DNA of 64,000 nucleotides, taken from assembly GCF_003704095.1 (NCBI RefSeq), contig NW_020845694.1, positions 620,001 to 684,000 on the forward strand, in the 5' to 3' direction. Position numbers and translations under genes: made by a program. Shown one piece after another: positions 4,451 through 27,326 of this stretch (the stretch's first letter is position 1; every line of letters starts with the position of its first letter). This DNA is from Pocillopora damicornis (lineage: Eukaryota). Below the pieces are notes generated by a model. The model did no database searches. It was not told the origin of the DNA and saw only the letters and a list, made by a program, of their open reading frames with translations.

Positions 4451-5350
4451 TCATGAGCAATGGAGAGTCTTTCGGCATATTAGAGCGTAAGCATCCCGGA
4501 AGTCACGAATCCTTGCACTGTAGATGATGAAGTTCATGGCTGAATTTGAAAGTGCCAAGGATCGGATCCACATGTAAGCAGTGCCATACATCTTAACAAG
4601 GGATTTACCAGCAGCAAAGAACACGACAATCATCGGCAGCCAACATGCGGTGAAGATAGCTATTACCACTGCCAGTGTGGACGCCACGCGGCGCTCGATT
4701 TTGGAATTAACGACTACTGTGGGTCGTGCTCTGAGTTTATTTTTTCTTCGCTTTTCTTTAACAAGAAAAGTCACGATGGTCGCGTAGCAGATAATTATCA
4801 ACCCATAGCTTATTACAAACATTACGAAGACTAGATAAGATGTCTCCTTAAGGAATGGAATGCGGCATGAAGCGAAAATGATAGATACGACCCAGACAAC
4901 TCCTAACATGATCTTCAAACCAGAACCGTTCATGATCCGTCCATGGCGAAGAGGGTAGACAACGGCAAGGAAACGGTCCACACTAATGGCTGCCAGGTGC
5001 ATGACTGATGCAGAGCACGAGAGGTTTGAGCCGATAACGTAAGCAAGCTCCAAGCTGGATGCACAATCATGGGAAAACGCTCTCTTAGCGACTATAGCAG
5101 CTACCAAAGGCTCGCAGATCATTGTCACTACCAAATCAGCAATGGCCAGGCTGAGAAGAAGGAAGTTGGAGCTGCGACGAAGACGAGTGCTCGTGAGCAC
5201 CGCAATACAAACCATAATGTTTCCACAGGTTCCGACCACGGCTGCTATAGAATTAACTATCATAAGAAGCACGCCATGCGTCTGCGGAAGGACGCAATCG
5301 TCTGCGGAGTCAATTGAAGTATTCGCGCTGTATTCCGAGGAAATATTCAT
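4451..5350 (-). CDS. Class A (rhodopsin-like) GPCR, subtype A copy 1, intronless CDS, 299 aa
   Basis: Seven hydrophobic segments; GN (TM1), SLAIADL (TM2), DRF (TM3), CWLP (TM6), NSAMNFIIY (TM7); splice acceptor tttgtttccAG just 5' of the ATG. Confidence 0.95.
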   Translation of the reverse strand: MNISSEYSANTSIDSADDCVLPQTHGVLLMIVNSIAAVVGTCGNIMVCIAVLTSTRLRRSSNFLLLSLAIADLVVTMICEPLVAAIVAKRAFSHDCASSLELAYVIGSNLSCSASVMHLAAISVDRFLAVVYPLRHGRIMNGSGLKIMLGVVWVVSIIFASCRIPFLKETSYLVFVMFVISYGLIIICYATIVTFLVKEKRRKNKLRARPTVVVNSKIERRVASTLAVVIAIFTACWLPMIVVFFAAGKSLVKMYGTAYMWIRSLALSNSAMNFIIYSARIRDFRDAYALICRKTLHCS

Positions 5351-7362
5351 TATTGATTAATTCTGGAAACAAAGCAAAGCTGAAGCAAAGCAAAACCGCT
5401 GTTTTACCTCCTCAAGAGCCAAGAAATTATGGCGTGATTCCCAATTGTTTGTCTGAACTACAGATTCTGTCGAGATATCTGAATATGTTCTGCGCGCGTC
5501 AAGGGAATAACAGATATTGGAGTTTCAGTGGTTTCACTTTTGCATTTCATATACAATCTTGCCAGTACACGAACCGTGACGTAAACAATGATCTATACTC
5601 TCAGAAAGGCAGGAATCTATTGTTTTGATCTTGAAAATCACGAGTGACCTTTTCAGTAAGAAGTAGGCGGAGGCAGGAGTAGGGGAGGGGGACTGGGTTG
5701 GGAGGGGACAGGGACTGAGGTGGGAGGGAAGGGTGACTGGGGTGGGTTAGCACTCCTGGTGGTATCCTATGACAATGCTGGATCAATCTAGTCTTCGAAT
5801 ACACGAGACAAATCAAGAAATTGGAAGTTCCTACCATTTCAATTGTCTTTTGGTAGGTGTTTCATCGGATCAGAGTGGAGTTCCGTGAGAGAATCAAGCA
5901 GAGTAATTTGATATTTTCGCCTCACGACTGGAAGGTCATTGGTCACCAAAAACGTGATGTTAGTATTTTAAGCCTCCTAGACAACATAAATATTTCCAGT
6001 ATTGTACATAGTTCAAGTGAATGAGCTTTTTCTGGTAAGAGGTAAAAACCCTGCTTCTCCTTAGCGGCCCTCCGCTTAAAAATGAAAAGACAATTCAAGG
6101 AAAAGTTCCATTTTGGCCATTTCTGAGAGTGAGAGGATCCAACGTAAGAGCGAATGGTTCGATGACGAAGGCCCAGAGCTTGGCCGCTCTTTACGGTAGC
6201 CAATTTACACTTCCAATTGCAGGGTCGCCTGCCTTATCAACATGATTAAAAGGTTGTCATGTTTGGTAGCGAATTTCATTCGTTGTAGCGAACTCTGGAA
6301 AAAACATATCAAGTGTTGTTTCACTTCAAGCCTGGTCAAAGCTGTAGTTTTTTTTAAATAAATGGTATTAACGTCAATCTACCTTCGTCGAGCAATCAAA
6401 AGTGGTACTCACGTGACAGGGTAATGTCACATACACGGTCCTCCCTCGACAAGGCAAAAAAAATTAATTGTCAAAGATGGCAACAATTTATTTTCCTTCC
6501 TATATCTTACATAGAACTGCAAAAGCACAACAATGAAAGCCATGATACCTTGTGTGACACTCTCTTGAAATCCGACAAGGAATGATCAAGAGGAGATTGA
6601 ACTTTACCAGAATCTCACTGATAGAAAAGCTGTTCAGTTGAACTTGTCATCTTATACGAAGGACCTAACAGATATTTGTTTATTGCTTGCGTGTAAGAAA
6701 ACACTACAAAGGATTTAGAACTGAAGACTGTTGATGTTAATATCTTTGCAGATAGGATGTTTCAGCTCAGTTCTTTTGTAAGATGTAATGATATTAATAA
6801 ACCAAATGACGATATGGATGTTTTTTATGGCACTCTGGTCATCTTTTAAGTACAGATATTCTGAAGACAAGTGCAAAGATGTTTTTTTAATTCAATATAT
6901 ATGGTTTTTTCCTTATCTTACTGAGAATGTTTTGTTTTGAATTACTATAACTTTTTCTTAGTTCTGTTTTACAGGAAGTAAGTTTTCGGGCCATCTCCAC
7001 ATTCACAGTTTTAATATTATTTGTTTGCATATTTGTCACCCTCCTGTCTATTTTTGATGATAAGTGGTTGGGAAACAAAGAATTTCCAGCTTAGAACTTT
7101 ATTCGAACCTGTATTTAGCGGCACTATATCACGCAATTACCCTGTATTTAGCGGTCGGTTTTCAAGGAAAATTTTTGGCTTTTTCCCTCAAGTACTGTAA
7201 CTTTCACCTCTACTAAGCGGTCATCTCTATTAAGCGGTCGTGGTCACCCATGACTGAACCCAACAGCCTGTTTACACTGTCTTTCACATGTATTGAACGG
7301 TCACTTGAGCGGAAATACTTACACAAACTATGAATAAACTTACTAAGGGAGGTTAGTTTCTG

Positions 7363-7617: not shown

Positions 7618-7717
7618 TCATAAGAAGCACGCCATGCGTCTGCGGAAGGACGCAATCGTCTGTAGATTCACTTGAAGTATTCGCGCTGTATTCCAGTGAA
7701 ATATTCTGTATGTTCAT
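7618..7717 (-). CDS. GPCR subtype A copy 2, N-terminus only (remainder in assembly gap)
   Basis: MNIQNISLEYSANTSSESTDDCVLPQTHGVLLM matches copies 1 and 3; 100-N gap follows. Confidence 0.75.
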
Positions 7718-10107
7718 TATTGATTAATTCTGGAAACAAAGCAAAGCTGATGCGTAATCCTCTGCTGTTAACTTTCTCAAGAGCCAAGAAATTATGACGG
7801 GATTCCCAATTGTTTGTGTGAACTACTAATTCTGTCGAGATATTGACAGATGTTCTTCGCGCAACAAGGGAATAACAGATATTTTTTCAGTTGTTTCGCT
7901 TTTGCATTCGATATACGATCCTTCCAGTTCATGGACCGTCACGTACACACTGATTTGTATTCCAAGGGAATAACAGATATTTTTTCAGTTGTTTCGCTTT
8001 TGCATTCGANNNNNNNNNNNNNNNNNNNNNNNNNNNNNNNNNNNNNNNNNNNNNNNNNNNNNNNNNNNNNNNNNNNNNNNNNNNNNNNNNNNNNNNNNNN
8101 NNNNNNNNNNNNNNNNNNNNNNNNNNNNNNNNNNNNNNNNNNNNNNNNNNNNNNNGATCGTTCAAATACACGAGATGATATATTAAGACAAATCAAGAAA
8201 TTTGAAGTTCCTACCATTTCAATTGAATTTTGTTTGGTGTTCCATCGGATGACATAATGACAGTGGACAGTGGAGTTCCGTGAGAAAATCTAGCCGAGTA
8301 ATTTGATATTTTCGCCTCGTGACTGGAAGGTTATGGGTCACCAAAAATATTTCCATTATTGTACATAGTTCAAGTGAATGAGCTTTATCCGGTAAAAGCT
8401 AAAAATTCTGCTTCTCCATAGCGGTTCTCCGCTTGAAAACGAAAAGATAATTCAAGGAAAAGTTCCATTTTGGCCATTTCTGAGAGTGAGAGGATCCAAC
8501 GTAAGAGCGAATGGTTCCATGACGGAGGCCTAAAGCTTGAAACGTCAGCTTTAAAAACTCTCTACGGTAGCCAATTTACACTTCCAATTGCAGGGTCGGC
8601 TGCCTTATCAACATAGTTTAAGGGTAGCGAGTTTCATTCGTTGTTGTGAACTCTGGAAAAAAGATATCAAGTGTTGTTTCACTTCAAGCCTGGTCAAAGC
8701 TGTATTTTTTTTTTAATTGATTGATTTCTAAATAATATTAACGTAAATCTACCTTGGTTGAGAAATCAGAGGCGGTGCTCACGTGACAGGGTAATGTCAC
8801 ACACAAGTCCTCCCTCGACAAGACAAAAAAAATTCATTGTCAAAGATGATAACGATTTATCTTTTTTCCGCAACAGCACGATAATGAAAGCTATGATAAC
8901 TTGTGTGGCACTGACTTGAAATCCGACAAGGAATGATCAAGAGGAGACTGAACTTTACCAGAATCTCACTGACAGATTTAAGCTGTTCAGTTGAACTTGT
9001 CTTCTTATACGTAGGACCTAAGAAATATCTTTTTATTGCTTGAGTGTAAGAAAACACAACATAGAATTTAGAATTAAAGAATGTTGATGTCAATACCTTT
9101 GCAGACAGGATGTTTCAGCTCAGTTCTTTTGTAAGATGTAATGATATTAATAAGCCAAATGGTGATATGGATGTCTTTTTATGACATTCTGACCATTTTT
9201 TGAGTACAGTGCAAAGGTGTTTTTTAATTCAATATATATGGTTATTTCTTATCTTATTTAGAATGATTTGTTTTAAATTACTATAACTTATTCTTAGTTC
9301 TGTTTTACCGGAAGTAAGTTTTCTGACCATCTCTACTTTACTATCTCTAGCGGTCGCTTTTCAAAGAAATTTTTCCCTCAAGTACTGTAACTTTCATCTT
9401 AAGCGGTCACCTCTATTAAGCGGTCGTGGTCACCCATGACTGAACCCAACGGCCTGTTTGTACTGTCTTTCATCTGTATTGGACGGTCACTTAAGCGGAA
9501 ATGCTTACATAAACTATCAATAAACTTACTTATGCACGAAAACCACGCAATTTATTTGCTGGTCATTCTATAATAAGCGGTCACCCCACTACTCCCTATG
9601 GGTGGCCGCTTAATAGCTAACCAAAAAATAATTAAATTAAACAATATAAATAAAAGAAAATAGTAGTTGTTGTAGCGATGTTTCGACAGGGACTCGGAAA
9701 AGGATTTGGTACTTTTGATTTAATAGTTCCTGAACCATCTCTTTTTTTTTTTTTTAATTACAAGTAGCTCCAATACTTATTTTTATCCTTTCACTCTCTG
9801 TGGAGGTACCAACTAGTATTTTCACCTTAAAATATCGATCCAAACCGTCAGAGCCTACCCTTAGTCATGAGAGATTTATGAAAGAGAGTAAACCAAATCG
9901 ACATTGAAATATTTGGGGTTAAATGTGCAGAATTTCTTCGACAGACATGTGCTCTGGGCTGAATGTAGCCGAAAATTTTCCAACGCTACTTTTTCCGCTA
10001 ATTATTTAGAGCCTCGACTACCTTTGACCTGATATTTAGCGTAACTTGCTTGACATTTTTATCACTGAATTTTCTTCTGAAATAGCCACCTTCGATCAGT
10101 AATCTGG

Positions 10108-11774
10108 TATGGGCGGCCGTCACCACTAAAATAACAGGCATCTTAAATGGTTTATAATAAGCAGAAATGGTCTAATTGTCTTTTAAGAGATTTATTTAAA
10201 CTTCAAATGGAAGATTCAAACAAGAAATGGTTTGTACAATTCAGAAAATGTGTAGCCATCCCTGATGAACTGATTCAATAAAAACACGAGTGGCCCAGCG
10301 CTGAAACGGTTCAGTGTCGAAATGACAAAGTCAAGTCTTGAATGGATCAGCGTGTTGTGACATTCATTGCTTTGCCAAACGGTCCAACTAACGGTACTTT
10401 GGTTCAGTGACATAACACAAACGGTTCAGAGCAGTGTGAATTGGCAAATAGTTAATTGTGAGCTGCAATGGTTCAGTATCAATCTGCATCAATCTGCTTA
10501 CCGTAAAGTGAAATGGTTTAGCGTAAGCCCAAATAGCTTAGCGTGACGACAACTAGTTTAGTACAAAGCGAAACGTGTTTTACAGCAATTGTTTTACAGC
10601 AATTGGTGTACGCCGTAACCACCAAAATGGATAAGTCAAGTTTGAAATCGAACAGTCTATGTCAGGTCTTACGTCACAACTTGCGTCATTCAGAACGAAT
10701 TTGGCGCGAAATTCGCCAGAATGAGGTATTCACCGCGCCGTCCACCCAAAGTTCAACAAAGGAAGAAATTATTTCTTATTTCCATAGCCTCGTCTACTAG
10801 ACTCAGTGAGCCTTATTCTGGAAAGAATCTTTTTTTTGTGTTTGCCTATTTGAGCTTGTTAGCGAGCAAATTTATATACCCTAATTATCTTGCCGCAATA
10901 TCAGCGAGTTAAGGATATTTCGGATGAAACCGTTTTTATCGAGGTGCTGAACGTTCAGTAGCTTAATAATCAGCTAATGAAAATGAAAGCAAGTTTAAGC
11001 TTATATTTCACCATAATATATTCTCCTATTATTTCTTACCACATATTTTTTTAATCTCCAATTCTTTCAGTTTTTAGCCGCCCGATGATTGTAGTTTCGT
11101 CGTCTTAAAACAATGAATCGCTTTATCACGTTTCTTAGCTAGGGTTATGACTGTCTAGACTGTCAATGTGCTGTCGCGTAAAGTGATGCTTTTTACCTGT
11201 ATTTTCATCATTCCTTTTGTTTCAGATTCTTATTTTATCATGAGACCGTCAAGTTTCCTATAGTTGTGGCTTAACTATGGTAAGAATTCTCCATTTAAAG
11301 TACAGCAGTTTTCACATTGAGAAACTGAAAAGATTAAAATAACAATTTGAAACTGGCTAATAGCAATCACGCTTAAGTGGCTTACGATTAACCATTTGCC
11401 GATAACTTAAGCCATTTCACACTACTCTGAACCGTTTGTGTCATGTCACTGAACCAAAGTACAGTTAGTTGGACGGTTTGGCAAAGCAATGAATGTCACA
11501 GTACGCTGATCTATTCAAGACTTGACTTTGTCATTTGACACTGAACCATTTCAGTTAACTCTGGGCCACGTGCGTTTTTATTGAATCAGTTCAACAAGGG
11601 TGGCTACACAGTTTCTGAATTGTATAAACCATTTTTTGTTTGAACGTTACATTTCACCAAAGGCAACTTGTCCATTTGTATTTTAAATCAATCTCTTAAA
11701 AGATAATTAGACCATTTCTGTTTATTATAAATCATTTATAATGCCTGTAATTTTGGCGGTGACGGCTGCCCATA
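10108..11774. mobile_element. Non-autonomous DNA transposon with long (about 350-400 bp) imperfect terminal inverted arms
   Basis: Left end TATGGGCGGCCGTCACCACTAAAATAACAGGCAT is the imperfect reverse complement of right end ATGCCTGTAATTTTGGCGGTGACGGCTGCCCATA; absent at the paralogous site (about 3829) in the first duplication unit. Confidence 0.88.
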
Positions 11775-12406: not shown

Positions 12407-13315
12407 TTACATGCAGTGGAGAGTCTTTCGGCATATCAGGGCGTAAGCATCCCGAAAGTCACGAATCCTTGCACTGTAGATGATGAAGTTCATGGCTGAA
12501 TTTGAAAGTGCTAAGGATCGGATCCACATGTAAGCAGTCCCATACATCTTAACAAGGGATTTACCTGCAGCAAAGAACACGACAATCATCGGCAGCCAAC
12601 ATGCGGTGAAGATAGCTATTACCATTGCTAGTGTAAACGCCACACGGCGCTCGATTTTGGAATTAACAACAACTGTGGGTGGTGCTCTGATTTCATTTTT
12701 TCTTCGCTTTTCTTTGACAAGAAAAGTCACGATGGACGCGTAGCAGATAATTATTAAGCCATAGCTTACAACAAACACCACGAGAACCAGATAAGATGTC
12801 TCCTTGAGGAAGGGAATGCGGCATGAAGCGAAAATGATAGATACGCCCCAGACAACTCCTAACATAATCTTCAAACCGTAACTGTTCATGATCCGTCTGT
12901 GGCGGAGAGGGTAGACAACGGCAAGGAAACGGTCCACACTGATGGCTGCCAGGTGCATGACTGATGCAGAGCACGAGAGGTTTGAGCTGATAACGTAAGC
13001 AAGCTCCAGGCTGGATGCACAATCATGGAGAAACGCTCTCTTAGCGACTATAGCAGCTACCAAAGGCTCGCAGATCATCGTCACTACCAAATCAGCAATG
13101 GCCAGACTGAGAAGAAGGAAGTTGGAGCTGCGACGAAGACGAGTGCTCGTGAGTACCGCAATACAAACCATAATGTTTCCACAGGTTCCGACCACGGCTG
13201 CTATAGAATTAACTATCATAAGAAGCACGCCATGCGTCTGTGGAAGGACGCAATCGTCTGTGGAGTTAATTGAAGTATTCGCGCTGTATTCCAATGAAGT
13301 ATTCTGTATATTCAT
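12407..13315 (-). CDS. Class A GPCR, subtype A copy 3, intronless CDS (ATG at 13315, about 302 aa)
   Basis: Highly similar to 4451-5350 with the same motifs; the ORF-track TTG start lies in the upstream splice acceptor. Confidence 0.95.
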   Translation of the reverse strand: MNIQNTSLEYSANTSINSTDDCVLPQTHGVLLMIVNSIAAVVGTCGNIMVCIAVLTSTRLRRSSNFLLLSLAIADLVVTMICEPLVAAIVAKRAFLHDCASSLELAYVISSNLSCSASVMHLAAISVDRFLAVVYPLRHRRIMNSYGLKIMLGVVWGVSIIFASCRIPFLKETSYLVLVVFVVSYGLIIICYASIVTFLVKEKRRKNEIRAPPTVVVNSKIERRVAFTLAMVIAIFTACWLPMIVVFFAAGKSLVKMYGTAYMWIRSLALSNSAMNFIIYSARIRDFRDAYALICRKTLHCM

Positions 13316-14774
13316 TATTGATTGATTCTGGAAACAAAGCAAAGCTGATGTACAAACCTCTGTCGTTTACTTCCTCAAGAGCCAAACAATTATGGCGTTA
13401 ACTACTAATTCTGTCGAGATATCTAAATATGTTCTTCGCGCGTCAAGGGAATACAGATATTGGAGTTTCAGTTGTTTCACTTTTGCATTTGATAAACGAT
13501 CTTTCCAGTACCTGGACCGTGACGTTAACACTGATCTATGGTCCAAATAAGGCAGGATTATATTGTTTTGATATTGAAAATCACGGGTGACTTTTGCAGC
13601 GAGAAGTAGGCGGGTACAGGGATGGGCAGGAGGGGGACTGGGATGGGCTAGCACTCTTGATGGTGTCTTACGATAATGCTGGATCAATCGAGTCTTCGAA
13701 TACAAGAGATGACACATTAAGACTAATCAAGAAATTTGAAGTTCCTACTATTTCAATTGACTTTTTGTTTGGTGTTGCATCAGATGACAGTGGATTTCCA
13801 TGAGAAAAGAGAGAATCATGCTGAGTAATTTGATATTTTCGCCTCATGACTGGAAGGCTATGGGTCACCAAAAACGTCATGTTACTATTATAGGCCTCTT
13901 AGACCACATAAATATTTTTTTAGTATTATATAGTTCAAGTAAATGAGCTTTTTTGGTAAAAGCTAAAAACCCTGTTTCTCCTTAGCAGCCCTCCGCCTGA
14001 AAATGAAAAGACATTTCAAGGAAAGTTCAATCCAATTTGGCCATTTCTGAGAGTGAGCGGATCCATCGTAAGAGCAAATGGTACGATGACGAAGGCCCAA
14101 AGCTCAAAACGTCAGTTTTAGCAACTCTCACACGCAGTCCCAACTTTTTTTTTCAAGGTCTTTTAAAAGTGTTCCCCACCAGAATGCAACTGAGGAGTTA
14201 AACTTATCTTAGGATTATGAATGGTCTATAAAAGTCGGGTATAGCCGACCACGTGCTGAAATAGAGACTCGAAACTCTTGTTGTTCGTCTAAGAGAAAGT
14301 GCCGGCGGCTGAATTCTCGAGACATGTAAGCATACAACGCGAAGCTGTTGTTTCAGTTTCAGCCATTTTCTATAACTTGATTTCCAAAATTAAACTGATA
14401 TTTTAAAATCAGCAAGTGAAGTTTTGCTTGTACAACTCTCCGCTGTTCGTCCCCTACACAACGAGATGGCCTTTGCCCCATTTTCACCTTAAATATGAGC
14501 AAAATGTGTGCAAAATGGTTGATTCCCTCCAACGCTCACGAAAAAATGGCCGCGACTGATGTCTTCTCTTTCTTACACCGAACGAATAAAAAAAAAAGGA
14601 TGAGAATGTAAGGTTAATGTCAGAAAGTATTGAAAAAGATTTTACTCTATACACACTGAGATTTACCTTGTGAAATCCTACTGTTCGTGTCTCTGATTGG
14701 ACGAACGATGTATTTTCACAGTCGTTCGCTTCGTACTTAAAAGTGTAAATCTCTGTGTGTATAAAATAAAAACA

Positions 14775-14920: not shown

Positions 14921-15996
14921 GATAGACAGATGTGACAGACTTCCCGTGCAACCTCATTAATAAACACATTTGAATGTTTAAAGAATTGGAATAATCAGGT
15001 AAGAGAAACGCGAGCACTATATGAGTGGTTGGCCTGCAGTACTAGGCCTGTATTTGAAAATGGGGAATTAACTGATTGAAGCAACTCAAGTGCTGCGAAG
15101 TCAGACACCTTTCAAATGCCCGATTCAAACATTTTCTAGCCGAGGCTAAGGCATCAATACACTGTGATGTAAAGTTTTGTCACTGTATAATATATGGAAG
15201 GCTTTTCCAGCAACTGAACTACTTATGACTACTGGATACTTGTTACAAGTAATAGGCTTTTTGTGGCAACCTGGGAGAATAGGCCTTTATCAAGGAAAAA
15301 TTGAAAATTGAGTAAGCTGCTGAACAGGCGTATTTAATATTTCATTTTATTTTATCTTTACCCTCTGTACACCTTTCCTTTGCATTTGCAAAGACCAGTT
15401 TGAAGCAAAATTAAGGTTCTTCTACACGCAACCGGATTGCTTTGACATGTTTCAATGCTTCGAATGGAAAAATGCCGAATGGATAAAGTCATTCGCGGTT
15501 TTTTATGTGTTCGAATGCGAGTTACGGTTGACTCATTGCGTTCTTTACATTAATCATTCTCGAGATTTCCAACTGTGAATAGAAAGTAGGATTGATTCGT
15601 GAATAAAAATCGTTCGTGCGCACTTTCCATGTTGATAGCTCACGACACTTGTGACAGACTTCCCGTGCAACCTCATTAATAAACAAATTTGAATGTTAAA
15701 AGGAATAATCATGCTTCGAATGGAAAAATGCCGAATGGATAAAGTCATTCGAAGTTTTTTATGTGTTCGAATGCAAGTTACGGTTGACTCATTGTGTTCT
15801 TTACATTAATCAGTTTCGAGGTTTCCAACTATGAATCGAAAGTAGGAAAATATTTGGATATAATTCATAAGCTTAACATAAGCGTATGATTTTTAATATT
15901 ATTAGAATAAATTGATCATTGCAACTGATCCCTTTACCACAGGACATAATATCAGAAGCTCTACCATACAATAGAACCGGTGTTTGCATTTTCAAC

Positions 15997-16622
15997 TAAG
16001 CAACCGAACATCTTGCGGGATATCGAGATATAGGCATCGCGGAAGTCTCGAATTCTTGCGCTGTAAATAACAAAGTTCATAGCAGAGTTAGAGAGAGCCA
16101 AAGATCTAATTCACATGTATGCTGGACCATAATTTTCAACCAGAGATTTTCCTGTGATGAAAAAAAACATCAACCAACGGAAACCAGCTGACAGAAAACA
16201 AACTGATGATCACAATTGCCAGTGTTAGTGCAACACGCCGTTCGACTTTCAAATTGACATTAATGGATGATTGCGCTCTTAGACGGCCCTTTCGTTTCCT
16301 TTCCCTGACCAAAGTAAGCAATATTGACAAGTAACACACGAACATGAGGGAATAACCAATGGAAAACATTACTGCAGCTAAGTAATAAGTTTTTTTCGGT
16401 AAGAGCTGTCGAACTGTGGCGAATGCAAAAGCGACAACCCACATTGTAGCCAGCATGATTTTCAAGCCATAGTTCTTCATGATCCGACCGTGACGGAGAG
16501 GGAAGGTGACAGCTAAGAGGCGGTCTGTACTGATAGCCACAAGATGCATAAACGACGAGGAACAGCAAAGTTGGCTAAAAGCGAGTAGACGAGTTCAAGA
16601 CTAGGCGCACACTCGTGTAGAA
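15997..16622 (-). pseudogene. GPCR subtype B pseudogene (5' third deleted, frameshifted, stop codon lost)
   Basis: Colinear with 26430-27052; indels in TM6; the TGA stop of the intact copy reads TTA here; homology ends abruptly at 16622. Confidence 0.9.
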
Positions 16623-17200
16623 TAATAACTTTCTTTATATAGTACTCGTATCCTCTGCTAAGACGCTTTACAATCATACAAAATCATACATTATTAATAA
16701 AAATTTACAAATTTACAACCATATCCTACTATATGATACTTAAACATAGCTAAAATTCATGCTGGTTAAAAAAGAAAAAGAAAACTAACGCCAGCCATAT
16801 CTTATGATAGGATACTTAAACATAGCTAAAATTTACAATGATTAAAAAAGAAAATTAAATCTAAAGCAATATATATAAATCTATAAAAATAATGGTCTGT
16901 TATTAATATATTTACTACACAGGAACGTCTTAAGTGCTCTTTTAAAAATTGAGATTGTGTTAGTTTCTGAGCTAAATAGCTAGGCGATGCCCCATTCAGT
17001 GATTTATACACTAGAAGCAGAATCTTGAAAATAATACGGTATTGGATCGGTAGCCAGCGAAGCTTCTGCAAAACAGGTGTGATATGCTGAAACTTACTCA
17101 TTTGACACACAACCCTAGCCGCCATGTTTTGTACATATTGCAATCTTTGTAACTGATACTTAGGCAAGCCATATAATAATGCATTACAAGCATTTGTAAG
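16623..17200 (-). mobile_element. 5'-truncated non-LTR retrotransposon (L2/CR1-like ORF2 C-terminus plus 3' tail)
   Basis: CNALLYGLPKYQLQRLQYVQNMAARVV..FQHITPVLQKLRWLPIQYRIIFKILLLVYKSLNGASPSYL is the typical post-RT region of L2/CR1-clade LINEs. Confidence 0.85.
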
Positions 17201-17322
17201 ATGGCTGAAACTAATTTGTTTCGAAACTATGACGGTCCTATTGTATATTAATACATAAAAACTCGAAGACACAGAGAGAAGCTGTAAGTATCGCAAAAAA
17301 ATATTTCAAAGATTCCAAAGAT

Positions 17323-17497
17323 TCCAACGTAGTGAATTTTCACTCGTTTTATGACTTTGTCTACGGCTGTAACAACGACAGGATAAAGTTTACGGTCGTT
17401 GGTTTTTGTTCTTATCTTCTTCTGAATAAACCCCCCCCCTTGAAAAGACCTCGTCGGAGTATCGTTTTGGGACTCTCCTTTCCCTTGCAGCCGCCAT
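17323..17497 (-). pseudogene. Truncated Tudor-knot/chromo-barrel-like ORF (not in the ORF track)
   Basis: ATG at 17497 in aaccATGGCG context: MAAARERRVPKRYSDEVFSRGG, then a 1-nt frameshift in the G9 run (17431-17439), then FIQKKIRTKTNDRKLYPVVVTAVDKVIKRVKIHYVG; the 'VKIHYVG' strand is a chromo-barrel signature; sequence breaks down after it. Confidence 0.6.
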
Positions 17498-18464
17498 GGT
17501 TACAAATTTAAATTGTTCCTAATGTGATTGATACTCTAATGCGCAAGCGCAGTAGGAAAAAACGTAGTCCGCGCCAGCCTGGACGCCACTTGGAGCAAAT
17601 GTTCGTGCTAATTATGGGAAGTAAGTTTGATATGGTAAAAATTCTCCATTTTAAGTACAGCAGTTTTTACATTAAGAAACTGAAAAGAATAAAAGAATAA
17701 TTTGAAACTGGCTAATAGCAATCAACAGAAAATCAAGTGCCAATGCAAACGCGGAGTTAACGCTTACGTGCAGGTTTTATTAAATGGCCCACAATTTTCA
17801 CGATGAAATACTTTGCGGTCCTTAACATCTAAGCGAGAACAATGAAGCAGTTCTCAATGATAGCAATCTTTTGTTTTTGTCATCAGACCTCATGGTGGAA
17901 GTTAACATTGCTATTAGCCACACGCCGGGGATTTCTGGCGGATTTTTCGGCCACATTATTTTCCAGTTTTTTCCCCGCCGCCATGTTGGCCGTGCGGAGG
18001 TCTGGCGCAAAGCCGGGAAATGATTAACTTTGCAGGCTCTCTATGAACTGTGGTTAAATGAAAGCGCGGTAAATTTGGAACCAACATCTAGATCCTCGCA
18101 AGAGCTTTTATTCAATACCAAACAAGGCGAAATAGGAGAAATATATTTGGTTTTCCCGTGGTTGAAAAGAGGAGACTGTCATGGCGTCGTGAAGCAAAGC
18201 ATATTTTTGAGGCATCTTAAAAAGATTTAAGCTTCAAAATGACAAGACGGCTAGAAGCTAGAGACAAAACTATGGAATCATGCGTTCATTGGTAAGGACT
18301 TCTCCGATTCAGAATTTTTTATTTTTGTCTCGTTTCCTTGATATCTGAACTTTTTAACGACTACCATGACTAGACTTTCGAGCATTTCGAGGTTTACTGA
18401 GCGAGCTACTCTCCCTTTGTCAACAGAATGTGGATTAAGACAGGTTGTAACAGAGTGCAGCGAC

Positions 18465-19239
18465 ATGCCACCAAGAAAAGGACAGAAAAATCGCTTCCCT
18501 TTGAATGAATATCTAGAGATTAAACGGAACCAAGATGCTCTTCTTGTGTCTGCCCTTGCCCGTGATAAAGAGTTTACGAAAAAGGCAAGGAAATTAAAGC
18601 GCCTCGAGTCAAAGGTAAACAACATCGAATATCAAATACTTGAATCTCCTGAACTTGCACGCATACATCTTCAATTGTTGTTAAGAGAAATAAAATATAA
18701 ATCAGAAGGCAGTTAAATTGCCTTTTACCTCTAAATACGTCGAAATGAGCAAATATTTTGGAAATTTCCACGAAATGACTCGTTTTCCTTTGATTTCAGT
18801 TAAACTCGGCTAATACTGTTGTGTTTTAGGCAAAATTGGTGAATGAGGATAACAAAAATGTGAAAGAAAAGGTCAGTACCTTCAATTCATGTGTACTCTT
18901 TTGAATATTATATTCTTGGAGAAAGCTTTCTCATTCCATGCGAACAGTTTATCAATAGAGTAATTTATGATTTACTCTGGCTGTGAAGTTATGCATTGAA
19001 ATAAAACTGAAGATTTGCATGGTCAAAATTTTTTGTCTTCCTCAGATCTCTGTTACAGACAACATTGTAGACAGAAGGACCCGCTCTCCAACAATTTTGG
19101 GAGATGAAGAGAAGATCTCTGGCCCTGGCCGTAACGCTAGACGAAGGAGGCTACAGACATTAAATGCTGCAAAAATGTTGCATGTAGCCACTGCTGAGAA
19201 TATGACACCAGCTTATGCAGGTCTCATAGCAGTTTTGAA
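18465..19239 (+). CDS. 5' exons of the RAG1/Transib-like transposase gene (18465-18614, 18830-18871, 19046 to gap at 19240)
   Basis: Three phase-0 GT-AG exons join to MPPRKGQKNRFPLNEYLEIKRNQD...KRLESK|AKLVNEDNKNVKEK|ISVTDNIVDRR...GRNARRRRLQTLNAAKMLH; the last exon overlaps the start of the copy at 19340. Confidence 0.6.
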
Positions 19240-19339
19240 NNNNNNNNNNNNNNNNNNNNNNNNNNNNNNNNNNNNNNNNNNNNNNNNNNNNNNNNNNNNN
19301 NNNNNNNNNNNNNNNNNNNNNNNNNNNNNNNNNNNNNNN

Positions 19340-20300
19340 TAGATGAAGGAGGCTGCAGACATTAAATGCTGCAAAAATGCTGCATCAAGCCACTGCCAAG
19401 AGTATGACACCAGCTTATGCAGTCTCATGGCAGTTTTGAATGAAAGAGCTTCAGTTTTGGTATTGAGTGATGCAATGATAAAGTGCGCTAAGTTCACAAA
19501 GATAGTTCTTCCTAAAATTGCAAAGCAGGAGATTAATATTTTTGAGAAAAGCCAAACAAATTGTATTAGAAGTGTAAATAATTTGTACAGTGGTGGCATT
19601 GCAAGCAAGCAGAAGTACAATTCAGTAAGGTCATTATTAATGATGTGCTTAGATAATGCTGAGGTTAAAAGGAAGCATATTGAATTCATGAGCAACAATC
19701 CAGTACCTAGACTTCTTTCCCATAAAGAGGTACCTAAAAAGAATGAATCAAATAAACACAGTTGATTTATATCATGTGAGAGAAACACTTTGCAAAGGGC
19801 TCAAGGATGAAGATATAGTTAATGGGAAGTACAGGGACCCAAAGCTAATGTTGAAAATAGCACAGTTTCATCTCAGTGCCAACAATTAGTGGAAAGATAA
19901 GCTTAACTGGTTTGGGACACTAGAGGAAACTTCTAAAGCTGCTATAGGGGGAATAGTACATCCTTTGGAAAGGATGACCAAGCATTGGCTTGGTTAGTTA
20001 GTTTCTTAAACTGTGGTCAGAGTGTGTGTAGCTCTGCAGAGAACTTTCTCTTAATCGGGGCCAATTACTCTGAAGACTGTGAGCCTGTTCGCAGATATGT
20101 GACACTGCTTGAAAGGCAAATGACTGAAATTGAGGGGAAATTGTTTTCAGTAGAAATTGAAGGTATGGAGAAGTTTGTTTCCTTCAATCTGAACTGCTAC
20201 CAAATGACATGAAATACAAATGAAAACACAATGGAGAGAAGGGAGGCAAAGCATGTTACTCTTGCCAAATTTACTAAAGCTATAGAAGCCATAAAATAGG
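19340..20300 (+). pseudogene. Degenerate, internally deleted copy of the RAG1/Transib-like transposase
   Basis: Multiple frameshifts; AIGG[D]..FGKDDQALAWLVSFLNCG (about 19941-20016, first catalytic Asp codon hit by a 1-nt deletion); PNDMK (about 20201) then jumps directly to NTM..REAKH and to the stop region. Confidence 0.75.
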
Positions 20301-21118
20301 TTAAAGGTGGCCTGTAATGAAACAGTTTCTTAGAATTTGCAAACTACAGACAAAAATATAACTTTTTTACTGTTACAATAATGTACTTAATATATGACCA
20401 TTTATGAGATATTCATTATATACCCCTACATACTATGTTAAAAGGAAAAAAACTATAAATGTAGATTATGAATACCTGTGTAATAATTTTTTTAATGTTT
20501 GCAAGAATAATTATTAAAATCAGAGCAAATTGTCAAGGAAAGTTGCTTTCTATCAAATACCTTAGTACCAATTATCATAGGATATGTATCACCTACTAGG
20601 CACATATGTTTGGGGTGCTGAAAGGAAAATTAATTTTGTGTCTCAATTCTCAATAATCAAAATGATTTCCATAGTATCTGAAGAATATTAATTTTATGAG
20701 TGATTCAAATGGAAGCAAATTACCAGTAGCGCATTGAATATCAATATAAAAAGTTTATAGTAATATATAGATATGTATATTTTAGATATATTCAGAGATT
20801 ACAAAAAAAATTTACTATTTCAATTTTTCATTAATATACAAAAATTGCATGCTGAATGTGCTGCCATCAAAAAATATTATTGTCTTAAATGTTACAATTA
20901 TAATAGTTGACTACAAAACTTTAAAAAGATATATGTATATCTAGCTGTCTTTGAGTTCCTTCTCAAAAGAGAACATAAATTTTGAAATATTAAAAATAAT
21001 TATAGCAATGTGTATGTTNNNNNNNNNNNNNNNNNNNNNNNNNNNNNNNNNNNNNNNNNNNNNNNNNNNNNNNNNNNNNNNNNNNNNNNNNNNNNNNNNN
21101 NNNNNNNNNNNNNNNNNN

Positions 21119-22392
21119 TTTAGTAGAAATTGATGGTAAGGAGAAGTTTGTGTCCTTTCAATTTGAACTGTTACCAAATGACATGAAATATTTGGCTTTT
21201 CTAGGAGGAGAACTAAGTATATCTGCCTCTTATTTTTCTCCATTTGCAGACATTAACAAAAAAGACATTGCCAACACTCAAGAAAATTTTGGTTCAAAAC
21301 CACAAGACAAATGGCATCCATAGAAATATTCAAAGACTTAGAGTGGCAGCTGCTGTGAAAGAGAAGAAAGAAGAGGTAAGTAAAACAACTCTGAAACCAG
21401 CCACAAAGCGTGAGAAAATAACATCTTTCATCTCACAGAAAAAATCCAGGCAAGAGTTTCTTCCTTTGGTTGGTAAATTTATTGATAGGGCCAAAGCAGA
21501 ACCCCTTCATTTGAAGAATAATGCTTGGCAACAATGGAATTCATCTGTCTTGATGTATTCTTTGTCACGCAGTCATCTTGGTGAACGTGAGTCTATTTCA
21601 GATGTTTCTCCGAACAGCTGTTTTGGTAAGTATTATCATACCATTAGATTCAATGTGAAAGCAACACGCTTGGCAAAAAAGATCAGGAAGTGGTTTGCAG
21701 GTGACAGAACAAAGAATAAACCCTTGGAATATCGCTTTACAGGTAAAGAGTCGCGTCTTTTTTGTCACAATTTCATGTATATCGTTGAAAGTCTGAAAAC
21801 TGATGAGGATCAGAATGTTCACACTTTCAAGTTACATGTTTTTGCCTACACAGGTTTGAATCTAAGAGATTCAGTCTCGCTTTTTAGTAGGATCTCAATG
21901 TCAAGTGAGCAGGTTCAAAGTCTCAGTCAAGTTTGTTCCAACTATTTCAGAGCTACTGCACTCTTTTTAAAGAGTACCCCTACTTCCTGGACAATTGGCC
22001 ATGTAGTGCCAGTTCATGCCCAGCAACTCCAGGAAACATTAGGTTTGGGCTTGGGAATAAACACAATGGAGGGAAGGGAGGCAAAGCATGTTACTCTTGC
22101 CAAATTTACCAACAATGCCCAGTATAACAACAGATGGAGTCAGGTTTTTAAGCATGAGTACATTTCATTATTCTGGTTACGAGAAAACGGGTGTGATGAA
22201 ACTGTGTACAAACACACTTCAAATGAGTATATACCTAAGAGGTGTTTCACCCATGACTTTTGTTACTGTGGTCTCCCCAAAGATGGTAATGTAGAGAAGT
22301 GTAGTTTTTGTTCCCGGCACTTTCAAAAATTAGTTTCAGACTGTGTTCTTCAAGGGAAAACCACACTTGAAGCTAAAGAGGCAATTAAATAA
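21119..22392 (+). pseudogene. RAG1/Transib/Chapaev-like DDE transposase core and C-terminus (one nonsense codon at 21321 plus a frameshift)
   Basis: FELLPNDMKYLAFLGGELSISASYFSPF (D at 21180), AEPLHLKNNA, KPLEYRFTGKESRLF, GHVVPVH...GLGINTMEGREAKH (E at 22078), C-terminal CYC..CSFC; motif order parallels the RAG1 core. Confidence 0.75.
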
Positions 22393-23084
22393 CTTAAAGG
22401 TGGCCTGTTATGTAACAGTTTCTTAGAATTTGCAAACTACAGACAAAAATGTAACTATTTTATTGTTATGATAATGTACTCAATATATGGCTACTTATTA
22501 GATACTCTTTATATATGCCAACATACAATGTTAAAAGGAAAACAAATTATNNNNNNNNNNNNNNNNNNNNNNNNNNNNNNNNATCAAAGCAAATTGTTCA
22601 AGAAAGTTGCTTTCTATCAAATGCCTTAGTGTCAATTATCATAAAGGATATGTATCATCTACTAAGCACATATGTTTGGAGTACTGAGAGGAACATTAAT
22701 TTTGTCTCAATTCTCAATAATCAAAATGATTTCCAGGGTATTGAAGATATATAATTTTATGAGTGATTCAAATGGAAGCAAATTACCAGTAATNNNNNNN
22801 NNNAGAGATTACAAAAGATAATTTACTATTTCAATTTTGCTATTAATATCCTCTAGTGCATTTAATATCAGTATGAAGAGTTTACAGAAATATATAGATA
22901 TGTATATTATCGATATATACAGAAATTACANNNNNNNNNNNNNNNNNNNNNNNNNNNNNCTATACAAAACGTTGCGTGCTGAACGTATTGCCATCAGAAA
23001 TTATTGTTTTTTTGAATGTTACCATTACAATCGTTGATATTAAAAGTATTATACTATAAGGATTGATCGTAGTTACTGTTCATT

Positions 23085-23741
23085 TCACACATGCTGCGGC
23101 CAGTCATGCTCNNNNNNNNNNNNNNNNNNNNNNNNNNNNNNNNNNNNNNNNNNNNNNNNNNNNNNNNNNNNNNNNNNNNNNNNNNNNNNNNNNNAATATT
23201 TTATTCCAAACTGTTTTTCATAACTTATGATTGCCTCTACGCGCTTGTTGCCTTTGATTTTTCTTTTCAAAAAGGTATTTTTACTCAGGTTTTGATCGGT
23301 ACAATCAGAAAATACCTTTCTCACTCTGTCACGAGAGGTGAAAGCAAACACACAGTTCTTTCGTGTTCGGTCAGCTATAACTCCGAAATTTGTCCTCGAA
23401 ACAATATTNNNNNNNNNNTGAAAAAGCTCTCTGTGCAGCTTCTCCTCCACGACCACCTGCCAAGCGTGTTTGACGGAACATCGTGNNNNNNNNNNTCGCT
23501 GAAATGTCTTAAGCCAATCTATGGCTTGCCTTTGAAACATTGGAAAATAATCTCCCAAGATGTGCTTAAATCCGGTTCGGTTATTGAAGTGTCGAAGCGA
23601 AACTGGTGCAGGCAACCCTCTTATATCATCTAGNNNNNNNNNNATATTATTACTTTGACCATCTTTGCCCGAAAGTTCAGCCTCTGCAACTACAAGCGCA
23701 CCACGAACAGTGTTCAAAAACACTCCACTAGTGTCCGCCAT
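23085..23741 (-). CDS. Uncharacterised ORF (about 200 aa) convergent with the transposase, interrupted by small gaps
   Basis: aaacATGGCG start at 23741; open frame MADTSGVFLNTVRGALVVAEAELSG...VVVEEKLHRELF...IISYEKQFGIKY maintained across four short N runs; 3' end uncertain. Confidence 0.6.
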   Translation of the reverse strand: MADTSGVFLNTVRGALVVAEAELSGKDGQSNNXXXXLDDIRGLPAPVSLRHFNNRTGFKHILGDYFPMFQRQAIDWLKTFQRXXXXRCSVKHAWQVVVEEKLHRELFXXXXNIVSRTNFGVIADRTRKNCVFAFTSRDRVRKVFSDCTDQNLSKNTFLKRKIKGNKRVEAIISYEKQFGIKYXXXXXXXXXXXXXXXXXXXXXXXXXXXXEHDWPQHV

Positions 23742-23904
23742 GTTTCGTTTGAAAAAAGCCAGTTTGAAGTTAGCCGCTGACGCATTACTTGAGCCCGTCG
23801 ATTTNNNNNNNNNNNNNNNNNNNNNNNNNNNNNNNNNNNNNNNNNNNNNNNNNNNNNNNNNNNNNNNNNNNNNNNNNNNNNNNNNNNNNNNNNNNNNNNN
23901 NNNN

Positions 23905-24023
23905 GCTGCTATAGAATTAACTATCATAAGAAGCACGCCATGTGTCTGCGGAAGGACGCAATCGTCTGTGGAGTCACTTGAAGTATTCGCGCTGTATTCC
24001 AATGAAATATTCTGTATATTCAT
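23905..24023 (-). CDS. GPCR subtype A copy 4, N-terminus only (remainder in gap)
   Basis: MNIQNISLEYSANTSSDSTDDCVLPQTHGVLLMIVNSIA matches the other A copies. Confidence 0.75.
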
Positions 24024-24290
24024 TATTGATTGATTCTGGAAACAAAGCAAAACTGATGTGTAAACCTCTATTGTTTACTTCTTCGGGAGTCAAGAAATTA
24101 TGGCGTGATTCCCAATTACTTGTGTGAACTACCAATTCTGTCGAGATATCTAAATATGTTCTTCGAGTGTCAAGGGAATACAGATATTGGAGTTTCAGTT
24201 GTTTCACTTTTGCATTTGATATACGATCTCGAGGGAGACTGGGGTGGGCTGGATCAATCGAGTCTTCGAATACAAGAAATGATGTATTAA

Positions 24291-25295
24291 GAGGGTGGCA
24301 AAGGAGGGGGGGAGGGGTTGCAATCACACATCACGCGAATTTTTCTATTAAATTACGCATCACGGAGGATTTTTTTAACCAATCTCGCGTCACGTAAAAA
24401 AGGAGTAAGTACGCTCAGCTAATACTGTAAGGTTTTTATCCCATCGGATGTATTATTAGAAATTGTATTGCATCCGACGTTTTCCTTCTGGTATGAATTG
24501 CGTTTCACATGACATATTGCTTTTGTTAGACAATAAAGACGACTTACTTGTTAAAACTAGACGCTCCGAGAGCGTTTACTCAGGCTTCGTATCGGAATGT
24601 TAAATCGTACTTTACAAGTATTGAACACAGTAAAAACGAAGAGTCTTGATTTTTTCAACATCTGAGGTGTTCGTCTGGGCATCATAGTCATCATAGTTCG
24701 TTGTTCAAGGAATCAGTAGTCGTAGCTTTGTCAATGTTTCCGTAGTTTGAACTTTTGTATGGTATAATGGTTGTCTCGTGAGAACTAGTATGAACTTTGT
24801 CAAATTGGCTATCTTTCAAGCTGTAGAATTCATGGACTGACCCGTGGACTTTACTACCACGACCACGAGATCGACAAAACTAACACAGAAGGTCATAGTC
24901 CATGTGCAAATTTTAACTTTATTAACTTATGCCTTTTGTGTCACGATTGTTTGGACCTACCGCGAAGATTAAAGACATCCAAGGTCAAGCAAAGCTTAGC
25001 AAAGGACGGAAAAGACCAGAAGACAGTGTCACAACTGCCCTGGTTTATTGATTTTTGTTAAGAGTCTATTTACTTTTAATGTCTGGTATCCTTCTTGGTC
25101 AAAGAGCGTTCACTTATCACGGAAATCTGATTAGTAAGTCTTGTAAATCACGCGTCACGGCTTGTAAAAATAGCAAATCACGCATCATGTTGTGATGTCC
25201 GGTCCCGCATCACGCGGATAATTTGGGTACAATCACGTGTCACCCAGCAAATTTTGGGGCCATCACGCGTCACGCAAAAACCCTTTGCCATCCTC
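24291..25295. mobile_element. Non-autonomous TIR element with GAG...CTC termini (Sola-like)
   Basis: GAGGGTGGCAAAGG at 24291 versus CCTTTGCCATCCTC ending at 25295 (13/14 inverted match); TTAA on the left flank; repeated subterminal ATCACGCRTCACG motifs. Confidence 0.75.
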
Positions 25296-26429
25296 CTTCA
25301 ACGCTCACGAAAAAATAGCCGCGACTGATGTCTTCTCTCTCTTAACCTGAACGAAATTTTAAAAAAGCGATGAGAATGTCAGGTTAGTGCCAGAAAGTAT
25401 TAAGAAAGATTTCATTCCCTGAACACTGATTTACCTTGTGAAATCCTATTGTTCGTGTCCCTGATTGGACGAACGATGCATTTTCATCGTCGTTCGCTTC
25501 GTACTTCAGAGTGTAAACATCATATCAGGGAAAGTGCGCACGAACAGCATGTTTTTAGTCATTCGTTGCGATGCATCAAAAAACTCACTCGTTCGCTGCG
25601 CTTAGTCGTTCTTTTTTTTTTTATTCAACGCAACTCGTGAATAAGAATCGTTCCTGCGCACTTTCCATGGAATAATCGCTATTTCTGCAACACAAGTTGA
25701 CAGATCACAACAGTTGTCAGTCTTCCCGTGCAACCTCATTGATAAAAACATTTGAATGTTTAATGGATTGGACGAAGCAGATAAGAGAAACTCGAGACCT
25801 TTCAAATGACCGATTCAAACATTTTCTAGCCGAGGCTAAGGCATCAATACACCGTGATGTAAAGTTTTGTTACTGTATAATATATGGAGGCTTTTCCAGA
25901 AACTGAACTAATTATGACTACTGGGTACCTGGCACTAGTATTAGGCTTTTTATTGCAACCTGGGAGAATAGGTCTACATCACGGAAAAATTGAAAGTTGA
26001 AAAAACTGCAGAACAGGCGTATTTAATATTTCATTTTATTTTATCTTTACCCTCTGTACACCTTTCCTTTGCATTTGCAAAGACCAGTTTGAAGCAAAAT
26101 TGAGGTTCTTCTACGTACAACCGGATTGCTTTGACATGTTTCAATGCATCGAATAGAAAAATGCCGAATGGATAAAGTCATTCGCGGTTTTTTATGTGTT
26201 CGAATGCAAATTAAGGTTGACTCATTGTGTTCTTTACATTAATCAGTTTCGAGATTTCCAACTATGAATCGAAAGTAGGAAAATATTTGGATATAATTCA
26301 TAAGCTTAAGTTAAGCGTATGATTTTTAATATTATTATAATAAATTGATCATTGCAACTGATCCCTTTACCACAGGACATAATATCAGAAGCTCTACCAT
26401 ACAATAGAACCGGTGTTTGCATTTTCAAC

Positions 26430-27326
26430 TCAGCAACCGAACATCTTGCGGGATATCGAGATATAGGCATCGCGGAAGTCTCGAACTCTTGCGCTGTAAA
26501 CAACAAAGTTCATAGCAGAGTTAGAGAGAGCCAAAGATCTAATCCACATGTATGCTGGACCATACTTTTCAACCAGAGATTTTCCTGCGATGAAAAAAAC
26601 AGCAATCAACGGAAACCAGGTGACAGAAAACAAAATGATCACAATTGCCAGTGTTAGTGCAACACGCCGTTCGACTTTCAAATTGACATCAATGGATGAT
26701 TGCGCTCCCACACGGCCCTTTCGTTTCCTTCCCCTGACCAAAGTAAGCAATATCAACAAGTAACAAACGAACATGAGGAAATAACCAACGGCAAACATTA
26801 CTGCAGCTAAGTAATAAGTTTTTTTCGGGAAGAGCTGTCGAACTGTGGCGAATGCAAAAGCGACAACCCACACTGCCACCAGCATGATTTTTAAGCCGTA
26901 GTTCTTCATGATCCGACCGTGACGAAGAGGGAAGGTGACAGCTAAGAAGCGGTCCATACTGATTGCCACAAGATGCATAATCGACGAGGAACAGCAAAGG
27001 TTGGCTAAAAGTGAGTAACCGAGTTCAAGACTAGGCGCACACTCGTGTAGAAAGGTTATTTTACCGACCATTGCCACGACCAAAGGCTCGCAGATCACTG
27101 TTATGATCAAGTCAGCAATGGCCAAACTAAGCAATGGGATATTCGAGCATCGGCGAAGACGAGGCTTGGTGAGTACCGCTATGCAAACAAGAAAATTACC
27201 AAACGTACCTAACAGGGCAATCAGCGTGTTAACTACCATTATAGCACAGCCATGGTATAGGGACAGGCAACAAACTTCAGCGCTAGAGATTGATGGATTA
27301 ACTTTGATCACCGAAGAGTTGTTCAT
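26430..27326 (-). CDS. Class A GPCR, subtype B, intact intronless CDS, 298 aa
   Basis: 7TM; GN, SLAIADL, DRF, TWFP, NSAMNFVVY; acceptor ttctttcAG just upstream of the ATG. Confidence 0.95.
   Translation of the reverse strand: MNNSSVIKVNPSISSAEVCCLSLYHGCAIMVVNTLIALLGTFGNFLVCIAVLTKPRLRRCSNIPLLSLAIADLIITVICEPLVVAMVGKITFLHECAPSLELGYSLLANLCCSSSIMHLVAISMDRFLAVTFPLRHGRIMKNYGLKIMLVAVWVVAFAFATVRQLFPKKTYYLAAVMFAVGYFLMFVCYLLILLTLVRGRKRKGRVGAQSSIDVNLKVERRVALTLAIVIILFSVTWFPLIAVFFIAGKSLVEKYGPAYMWIRSLALSNSAMNFVVYSARVRDFRDAYISISRKMFGC

Follow-up and report, generated by a model that had tools for sequence, protein, structure and literature searches.

RAG1 depends on RAG2, and how this dependence arose is a central question for the origin of V(D)J recombination. 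Is there a RAG1-type transposase that keeps company with an unrelated second protein? The question is raised by one locus in a 64,000-nucleotide stretch of the genome of Pocillopora damicornis (contig NW_020845694.1, positions 620,001 to 684,000), which we call the window. An earlier note had described positions 17243-23804 of the window as a three-gene mobile cassette built around a RAG1/Transib-like transposase. We conclude that the segment from 17921 to the gap at 23805-23904 is very probably a single copy of a DNA transposon of the cut-and-paste type that carries two genes. Gene 1, on the plus strand, has four exons, a start codon at 18465 and a stop at 22392, and would encode a DDE transposase of about 700 residues with a predicted RAG1/Transib core fold. 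Gene 2, on the minus strand from 23741 to 23085, would encode a protein of about 210 residues labelled DUF8238. Inverted ends with an initial CAC would enclose both genes, and the window assembly appears to interleave a full-length form of the locus with an alternative one that has an internal deletion. The analysis demonstrates the predicted fold, the inverted ends, a spliced transcript, the kept order and direction of the two genes, and the action of purifying selection on each of them. We class the element as a variant, probably new, inside the RAG1/Transib kind. The window is eukaryotic, and its closest relatives are stony-coral sequences. Genome searches at contig level covered the window's own genome (G000, 234 Mb), in which the window lies on contig C2329.

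A transposase family with a predicted RAG1 core

The 382-residue open reading frame (ORF) at 21244-22392 gave no match in Pfam and no sequence match in the Protein Data Bank (PDB). It was matched on 28 other contigs of the same genome at 27-77% identity, mostly with stops. A protein search led to a family of about 700-770 residues, mostly uninterrupted ORFs, whose members are all unnamed and carry no Pfam domains; they come from Desmophyllum, Dendronephthya, Actinostola, Porites and the hemichordate Ptychodera. In an alignment of 25 members, the motifs GxDGAPFGK, P-D-K, SRQE...PLHxxNN, MxGRExK and a C-terminal CxCG...CxxC are invariant. Conserved cysteines are limited in this alignment to C696, C698, C708 and C711 near the C-terminus, and the N-terminal part has no conserved cysteine or histidine. 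The window's subfamily has one more, fragmentary copy on another contig (L039, G000:C1536:18533-20126; 73-89% DNA identity), its similarity to the window starting at 18916.

The AlphaFold model of family member P0001 has a pLDDT of 88.7 and a pTM of 0.83. In a Foldseek search with this model, the top 49 matches were all RAG1, BbRAG1L or HzTransib, with a best E value of 1e-11. Using VIA-align, 475 residues were aligned to mouse RAG1 (460-1005) with a root-mean-square deviation of 4.5 Å and a Z score of 21.8; the scores were 19.2 for amphioxus BbRAG1L, 18.3 for HzTransib, 11.9 for the P element transposase and 6 for Hermes. The match covers RAG1 from the DDBD through the CTD, and some alignments extend back toward the NBD. 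As modelled, the transposase family has the multi-domain RAG1-core fold, with DDBD, pre-RNase H, RNase H, zinc-binding insertion and CTD. The earlier note's RAG1/Transib-like transposase is thereby upheld by predicted fold and, as described below, by CAC-type ends, and not by sequence.

Combining the model with the alignment places the invariant D250 at the end of strand 1, D331 just after strand 4 and E635 on a later helix. The layout is, as predicted, that of a DDE enzyme of the RNase H type that bears a large helical insertion; the three residues form a putative triad that would correspond to RAG1 D600, D708 and E962. In RAG1 a zinc-binding cysteine pair directly follows the second catalytic aspartate, whereas the family consensus has no cysteine after it.

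The same genome also contains a canonical RAG1L/Transib-type fragment (L053, G000:C3529:48-1611) on a contig of 1.8 kb, which matches Pfam RAG1 in three pieces (82, 76 and 50 bits) and has one stop. The genome therefore holds both recognisable and sequence-invisible kinds, and a sizeable share of RAG1-like diversity escapes sequence profiles.

Convergent partner and inverted ends

The minus-strand ORF starting at 23741 faces the plus-strand DDE gene tail to tail, as the earlier note had described, and the convergent, non-kelch partner proposed there proved to be conserved and to lie within the inverted ends. In the window this gene (23085-23741) crosses three 10-N gaps and one 83-N gap and was treated as separate pieces. 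A profile built from proteins labelled DUF8238 matches 23193-23741 with an E value of 3.4e-34; the C-terminal end, with its stop at 23085, lies past the gap at 23112-23194 and matches the last motif of the family. The pieces are 52-83% identical to an intact, unannotated 207-residue ORF of Porites evermanni (locus L027, 13974-14597), which lies downstream of P0072, the closest transposase relative of the window.

Is the pairing kept at other loci? According to gene tables, a minus-strand DUF8238 gene lies downstream of the transposase at P0001 (L028), P0066 (L043), P0002 (L054), P0007 (L055), P0085 (L056) and P0037 (L062), with a long terminal repeat retrotransposon separating the two genes at L062. 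The identical transposase P0059 occurs on four contigs of one genome, and in all four the DUF8238 gene is at equal distance. Profiles of both families were then applied to the 19 loci flanked by 1 kb or more. At 14 of them the partner lies downstream in convergent orientation; it is absent at four decayed loci, and at L006 it is on the same strand as the transposase, beyond a scaffold gap. It is present at every one of the eight intact-transposase loci with DNA, which include Porites evermanni and Ptychodera flava. At the Ptychodera flava locus L061, an unannotated minus-strand DUF8238 ORF (11052-11600, E 5.6e-41) runs convergently with a gene that belongs to the transposase family and is annotated as 'uncharacterized protein'; the pair therefore exists in a deuterostome. 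Both genes are under purifying selection, with ratios of nonsynonymous to synonymous substitution of 0.11-0.16 for transposase and partner alike.

These observations bear on whether two unrelated repeats, nested in one another, lie side by side by chance. Partner-start fragments do occur alone, on the small contigs C2503, C1442 and C458. However, the contigs with lone fragments are short or ridden with gaps, two of the fragments adjoin the element's end motif, and the same order and orientation recur inside shared ends across transposases 35-45% identical, in several species and two phyla. We regard chance adjacency as extremely improbable.

The partner family comprises 258 clusters at 50% identity, nearly all of them standalone proteins of 200-275 residues or fragments thereof. 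A model made from P0121, the partner at L028, has a pLDDT of 91.9 and consists of a long helical hairpin (residues 2-95) and an eight-strand alpha/beta domain (108-215). Fold searches with it (pdb, pdb_via_wide, pdb_via and viral) returned generic helical-hairpin matches only, with Z scores up to 8.3, and no kelch propeller, PHD finger or chromodomain. The C-terminal domain reached a Z score of only 5.1 in fold searches. For the partner fold, ESM Atlas yielded no usable match. As modelled, the partner is neither kelch nor PHD. In the literature searched we found no paper that names DUF8238 or describes the pair of transposase and DUF8238.

The left terminal inverted repeat of the window copy lies at 17921-17937 on the plus strand and starts with CAC; it is the same end motif of 16-17 nucleotides as at the L028 and L027 ends. 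The motif has a single match within the window, with 0.10 expected by chance. Two comparisons place the boundary at exactly this position: similarity to the Porites left end begins at 17921, and a DNA contig of run X14, an unrelated coral metagenome, departs from the window there. At L028 the inverted ends, at 309 and 5098, are identical at 17 of 17 positions, start with CAC and enclose both genes, and two independent contigs stop or start at them. At Porites L027 the motif is found at 8583 and 14692, again enclosing both genes, the right end lying 95 bp past the partner ATG. In the window, the region past the partner start toward the right end (23742-23804) closes with 12 bases before the gap that align with Porites subterminal sequence. 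Ends starting with CAC were also found at the partner side of a separate copy on C2503, at the right of L054 and at the left of L055. L054 (10241-10256) and L055 (4918-4933) have one recognisable inverted end each, though the ORFs of both genes are intact; they may be immobilised or domesticated copies. Scans for terminal inverted repeats at L056 and L061 gave weak candidates only. A genome-wide scan with the end motif gave as many matches as the control and, in the window's genome, no paired ends resembling miniature inverted-repeat transposable elements.

The left end also delimits the cassette. The earlier note had counted a chromo-barrel ORF, running leftward from 17497, as a divergent third gene. 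It stands head-to-head with the transposase, 968 bp upstream of the ATG, and a chromo- or Tudor-like motif is seen in two relatives of the fragment, L021 and L022, whose MBT, SAWADEE and Tudor-knot matches in Pfam are sub-threshold only; the window fragment itself has no Pfam match. The ATG exists, but after 19 codons its frame is interrupted at 17431-17439, where the minus strand has nine consecutive G, and the chromo-like frame itself comprises 45 codons (17296-17430). Moreover, the ORF is external to the element, 424 bp away from its left inverted end, and is part of a 380-bp repeat (17257-17642) that has at least five other copies at 79-85% identity (C3923, two on C155, C3713 and C203) and more distant matches elsewhere in the genome. 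None of the contigs with the other copies has a match to the transposase family, and Porites L027 has no counterpart of the ORF, though it shares both other genes. Of the proposed trio, transposase and partner recur together at other loci, but no other copy of the repeat with the chromo-like ORF was found near this transposase. We reject a three-gene cassette as very improbable; the ORF at 17296-17497 is a neighbour and not a cassette gene.

Two further repeats were noted on this side. One is a 94-bp repeat (17631-17724) that recurs at 11276-11369 and on no fewer than four other contigs. The other is a perfect 14-nucleotide inverted pair (17709-17722 and 17907-17920), the right arm of which adjoins the left end of the element. 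This may be a small element beside the insertion site.

Several observations weigh against a RAG1/Transib-type transposon at this locus. No sequence-level link of the family to RAG1 or Transib was detected: no Pfam family is matched at E values up to 10, the family profile has no match in PDB, Pfam RAG1 (PF12940) matches only C3529 in the window's genome and none of the transposase family's loci, and alignment of the family with that canonical RAG1L locus by hhalign gave no match. The window copy as assembled carries frame shifts, and its right end is expected inside the gap at 23805-23904 and is unread. Target-site duplications are 5 bp long in Transib and RAGL elements and 2-4 bp in CMC elements; the check that the earlier note had proposed yielded the CAC-type inverted ends but no locus with two matching flanks, since the flanks differ at L027, the only locus with both. 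Finally, to our knowledge no CMC or Chapaev structure has been solved or is in the PDB, and those relatives are therefore compatible with the fold match.

The last point opens another placement: the transposase would belong on the Chapaev/CMC side of the wider superfamily and not in the Transib/RAG1 clade, its likeness to RAG1 reflecting only which structures have been solved. We know of no second gene in Chapaevs. CAC ends are common to CMC elements. Kapitonov and Koonin assigned Chapaev and Chapaev3, which occur in sea anemone and lancelet, to the Transib superfamily as distant clades (PMC4411706). On the other hand, Chapaevs bear an N-terminal Chapa zinc finger (PMC4411706), for which the N-terminal part of the coral family offers no conserved cysteine or histidine, and the fold match spans RAG1 from DDBD through CTD and partly toward the NBD. 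We consider the Chapaev/CMC placement unlikely, though by no means negligible.

The reading as a two-gene transposon of the RAG1/Transib kind can be carried further. The CAC ends would be cut by the transposase through nick-and-hairpin chemistry, as in RAG1 and Transib. The partner would be a required accessory subunit, or a factor that binds the ends or the target, and would fill the role of RAG2 toward RAG1L without kinship to RAG2. In the widest form of this reading, the family would be a deep, hitherto undescribed branch of the RAG1/Transib superfamily in cnidarians and hemichordates, with an independently acquired obligatory accessory subunit (DUF8238) unrelated to RAG2; we put this forward tentatively, as possible and somewhat short of probable. 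If true, the DUF8238 partner would be a second, parallel solution to operating a RAG1-type enzyme as a two-protein machine.

The gene in the window, its assembly and its surroundings

The plus-strand DDE-type gene is found as the earlier note had given it, with its ATG at 18465, its stop at 22392 and parts present twice. The note had also called the gene intron-containing. There are three true introns, all at the 5' side, whereas the remaining breaks are frame shifts or assembly redundancy. The introns (18292-18426, 18615-18829 and 18872-19045) all have GT..AG borders and are present in RNA runs only, which identifies the first three joints as introns; the joints 19228>19430 and 20145>21119 also appear in DNA runs and are therefore not splicing. 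An RNA contig of 3032 nucleotides (X16 record 15, from an oligo-dT library) runs through 18029-18290, 18426-18612, 18828-18869, 19044-19228, 19430-20145, 21119-22549 and 22583-22735, in this order. After shifting of the cuts the exons are 18029-18291, 18427-18614, 18830-18871 and 19046 onward, in phase 0 throughout from the ATG. Phase was checked by arithmetic, with exons read singly, and the splice sites were confirmed in the sequence.

Exon 1 (18029-18291) is a non-coding leader, whose joint 18290>18426 occurs in two RNA runs and in no DNA run. Exon 2 (18427-18614) contains the start codon and 50 codons, as judged from RNA joints, translation and splice donor, and is conserved with Porites L027 (9143-9283). 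Exon 3 (18830-18871) has 14 codons in phase 0; its joints, 18612>18828 and 18869>19044, show GT..AG after a two-place shift of the cut. Exon 4, the main coding exon, starts at 19046-19228, in frame with exons 2 and 3, and matches residues 3-65 of P0072. It continues at 19430-20145 in a diverged alternative form, for which tblastn frames indicate frame shifts near 19741 and 19951. RNA contigs and X3 DNA differ from the window here by about 10%, X14 DNA agrees with it, and the first-aspartate motif (GxDGAPFGK in the family) is unreadable in any single frame of this part of the window. The remainder (21119-22392, stop 22390-22392) includes the open frame at 21244-22392 and is 70% identical in amino acids to P0072. 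It contains the second-aspartate motif (21177-21188), SRQEF, PLH, the glutamate motif (22069-22086) and the C-terminal CxC...CxxC (22261-22311). The 3' untranslated region (22393-22735) extends at least as far as the RNA contig reaches and recurs within the alternative form, at 20277-20728.

Six RNA runs from four studies contain 83-86% of sampled words of 21119-22550. Compared with the window, the transcribed form, seen in other samples, lacks a base near 19741, has an additional one near 19951 and two additional ones near 21325, the last being a position at which the DNA runs X3 and X14 match the window. Because these small insertions and deletions coincide exactly with the frame changes of the window, the frame of the transcribed form is continuous.

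Transcription raises the alternative of a fixed gene pair that is kept by the host and no longer mobile. The gene is spliced and is present in polyA RNA libraries of four studies, both genes are under purifying selection, the window's subfamily is single copy in the genome, and L054 and L055 combine intact ORFs with one recognisable end each. Against a domesticated pair stand the matches on 29 contigs of the genome, mostly decayed, and the identical multi-copy elements in some corals. In addition, the left end is intact in the window, the Porites copy sits in another genomic context, an intron of an LDL-receptor gene, and the frames are shifted in the window's individual. We judge domestication improbable and retain the two-gene transposon.

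Much of the disorder that the earlier note had attributed to decay comes from the assembly; the copy is decayed only in part, and two alternative locus forms were assembled in tandem. The block at 19229-19429 is redundant, consisting of a duplicated flank and the gap 19240-19339: 19138-19239 is 90% identical to 19340-19440, and X3 DNA and X15 and X16 RNA join 19228 straight to 19430, omitting 201 bases without a change of frame. The segment 20146-21118 (plus strand), outside the full-length gene, is the tail of the internally deleted form together with the gap 21019-21118. Here 20146-20216 repeats 21119-21190, 20224-20277 repeats 22059-22112, and 20277-20910 repeats 22370-23037; some contigs join 20145>21119 and others 21018>23037. 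Taken together, these contig joints and internal repeats show that the full-length form is followed in tandem arrangement by an alternative one at 19340-21018, which has diverged by about 10% and carries an internal deletion. DNA and RNA contigs show that the gaps 19240-19339 and 21019-21118 do not join continuous sequence. The gap 22551-22582 is spanned by RNA-library contigs with other letters between its sides, contigs extend across the gaps 22931-22959 and 23112-23194, and for the gap 22794-22803 no clear bridging by contigs was seen. Porites L027 likewise has a second copy of the transposase C-terminal part (12460-12921), in which an ORF begins at the MEGREAKH motif (12595). The deleted form in the window (20224-20277) breaks at the same motif; related breakpoints recur in the two species.

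The element lies among paralogs of an intronless G-protein-coupled receptor (GPCR). Homology to the GPCR-B upstream region stops at 17242, in agreement with the earlier note. The body of one paralog is found at 15711-16622 and is 94% identical to 26144-27052. Between this body and the chromo-like repeat lie a 76-bp tandem duplication (16716-16867) and a minus-strand ORF (16826-17296) that by eye resembles the C-terminal part of a retroelement reverse-transcriptase ORF, without a Pfam match. On the other side, another intronless GPCR paralog is represented at 23905-24229 by its start and upstream region, with 86-88% identity to 5241-5559, 7618-7920 and 13197-13502. It abuts the gap at 23904 and its body does not follow; either the element or the assembly has cut it short. 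Downstream of this GPCR start, at 24324-25280, there are several occurrences of short motifs of the TCACGCGTCACG type.

Comparison with known systems

The pairing with a transposase gives a lead to the function of DUF8238 (PF26709), an orphan Pfam family without described function, whose link to a transposase we did not find in writing. Partners at related loci bear this label, and the window pieces match the profile built from them. Chapaev and Chapaev3 resemble the coral element as distant RAG1/Transib relatives with CAC-type ends and differ from it, as described, in their N-terminal Chapa zinc finger or RING.

Transib, represented by HzTransib, shares with the coral family the predicted fold, CAC-type ends and a main coding exon in one block. 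In contrast to the coral family, it has one gene instead of two; the coral transposases have an extra N-terminal region and the C-terminal CxC...CxxC tail, and no similarity was detected at the sequence level. The RAGL/ProtoRAG elements are alike in having a transposase of RAG1-core fold and a convergent second gene within inverted ends that start with CAC, and in their occurrence in cnidarians and deuterostomes. They differ in that the coral partner is a protein of about 210 residues with a helical hairpin and an alpha/beta domain, and not a six-bladed kelch propeller or a PHD finger, and in that the coral transposase escapes Pfam RAG1 and has no cysteines following its second catalytic aspartate. 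The coral element thus falls outside RAGL by the nature of its partner and outside Transib/RAG1 by sequence. A transposase of RAG1 fold with an unrelated partner in the same convergent position, in two phyla and under selection, is a natural comparison to RAG1/RAG2. With it one can test directly whether RAG1-type enzymes generally require a second subunit, and what such a subunit does.

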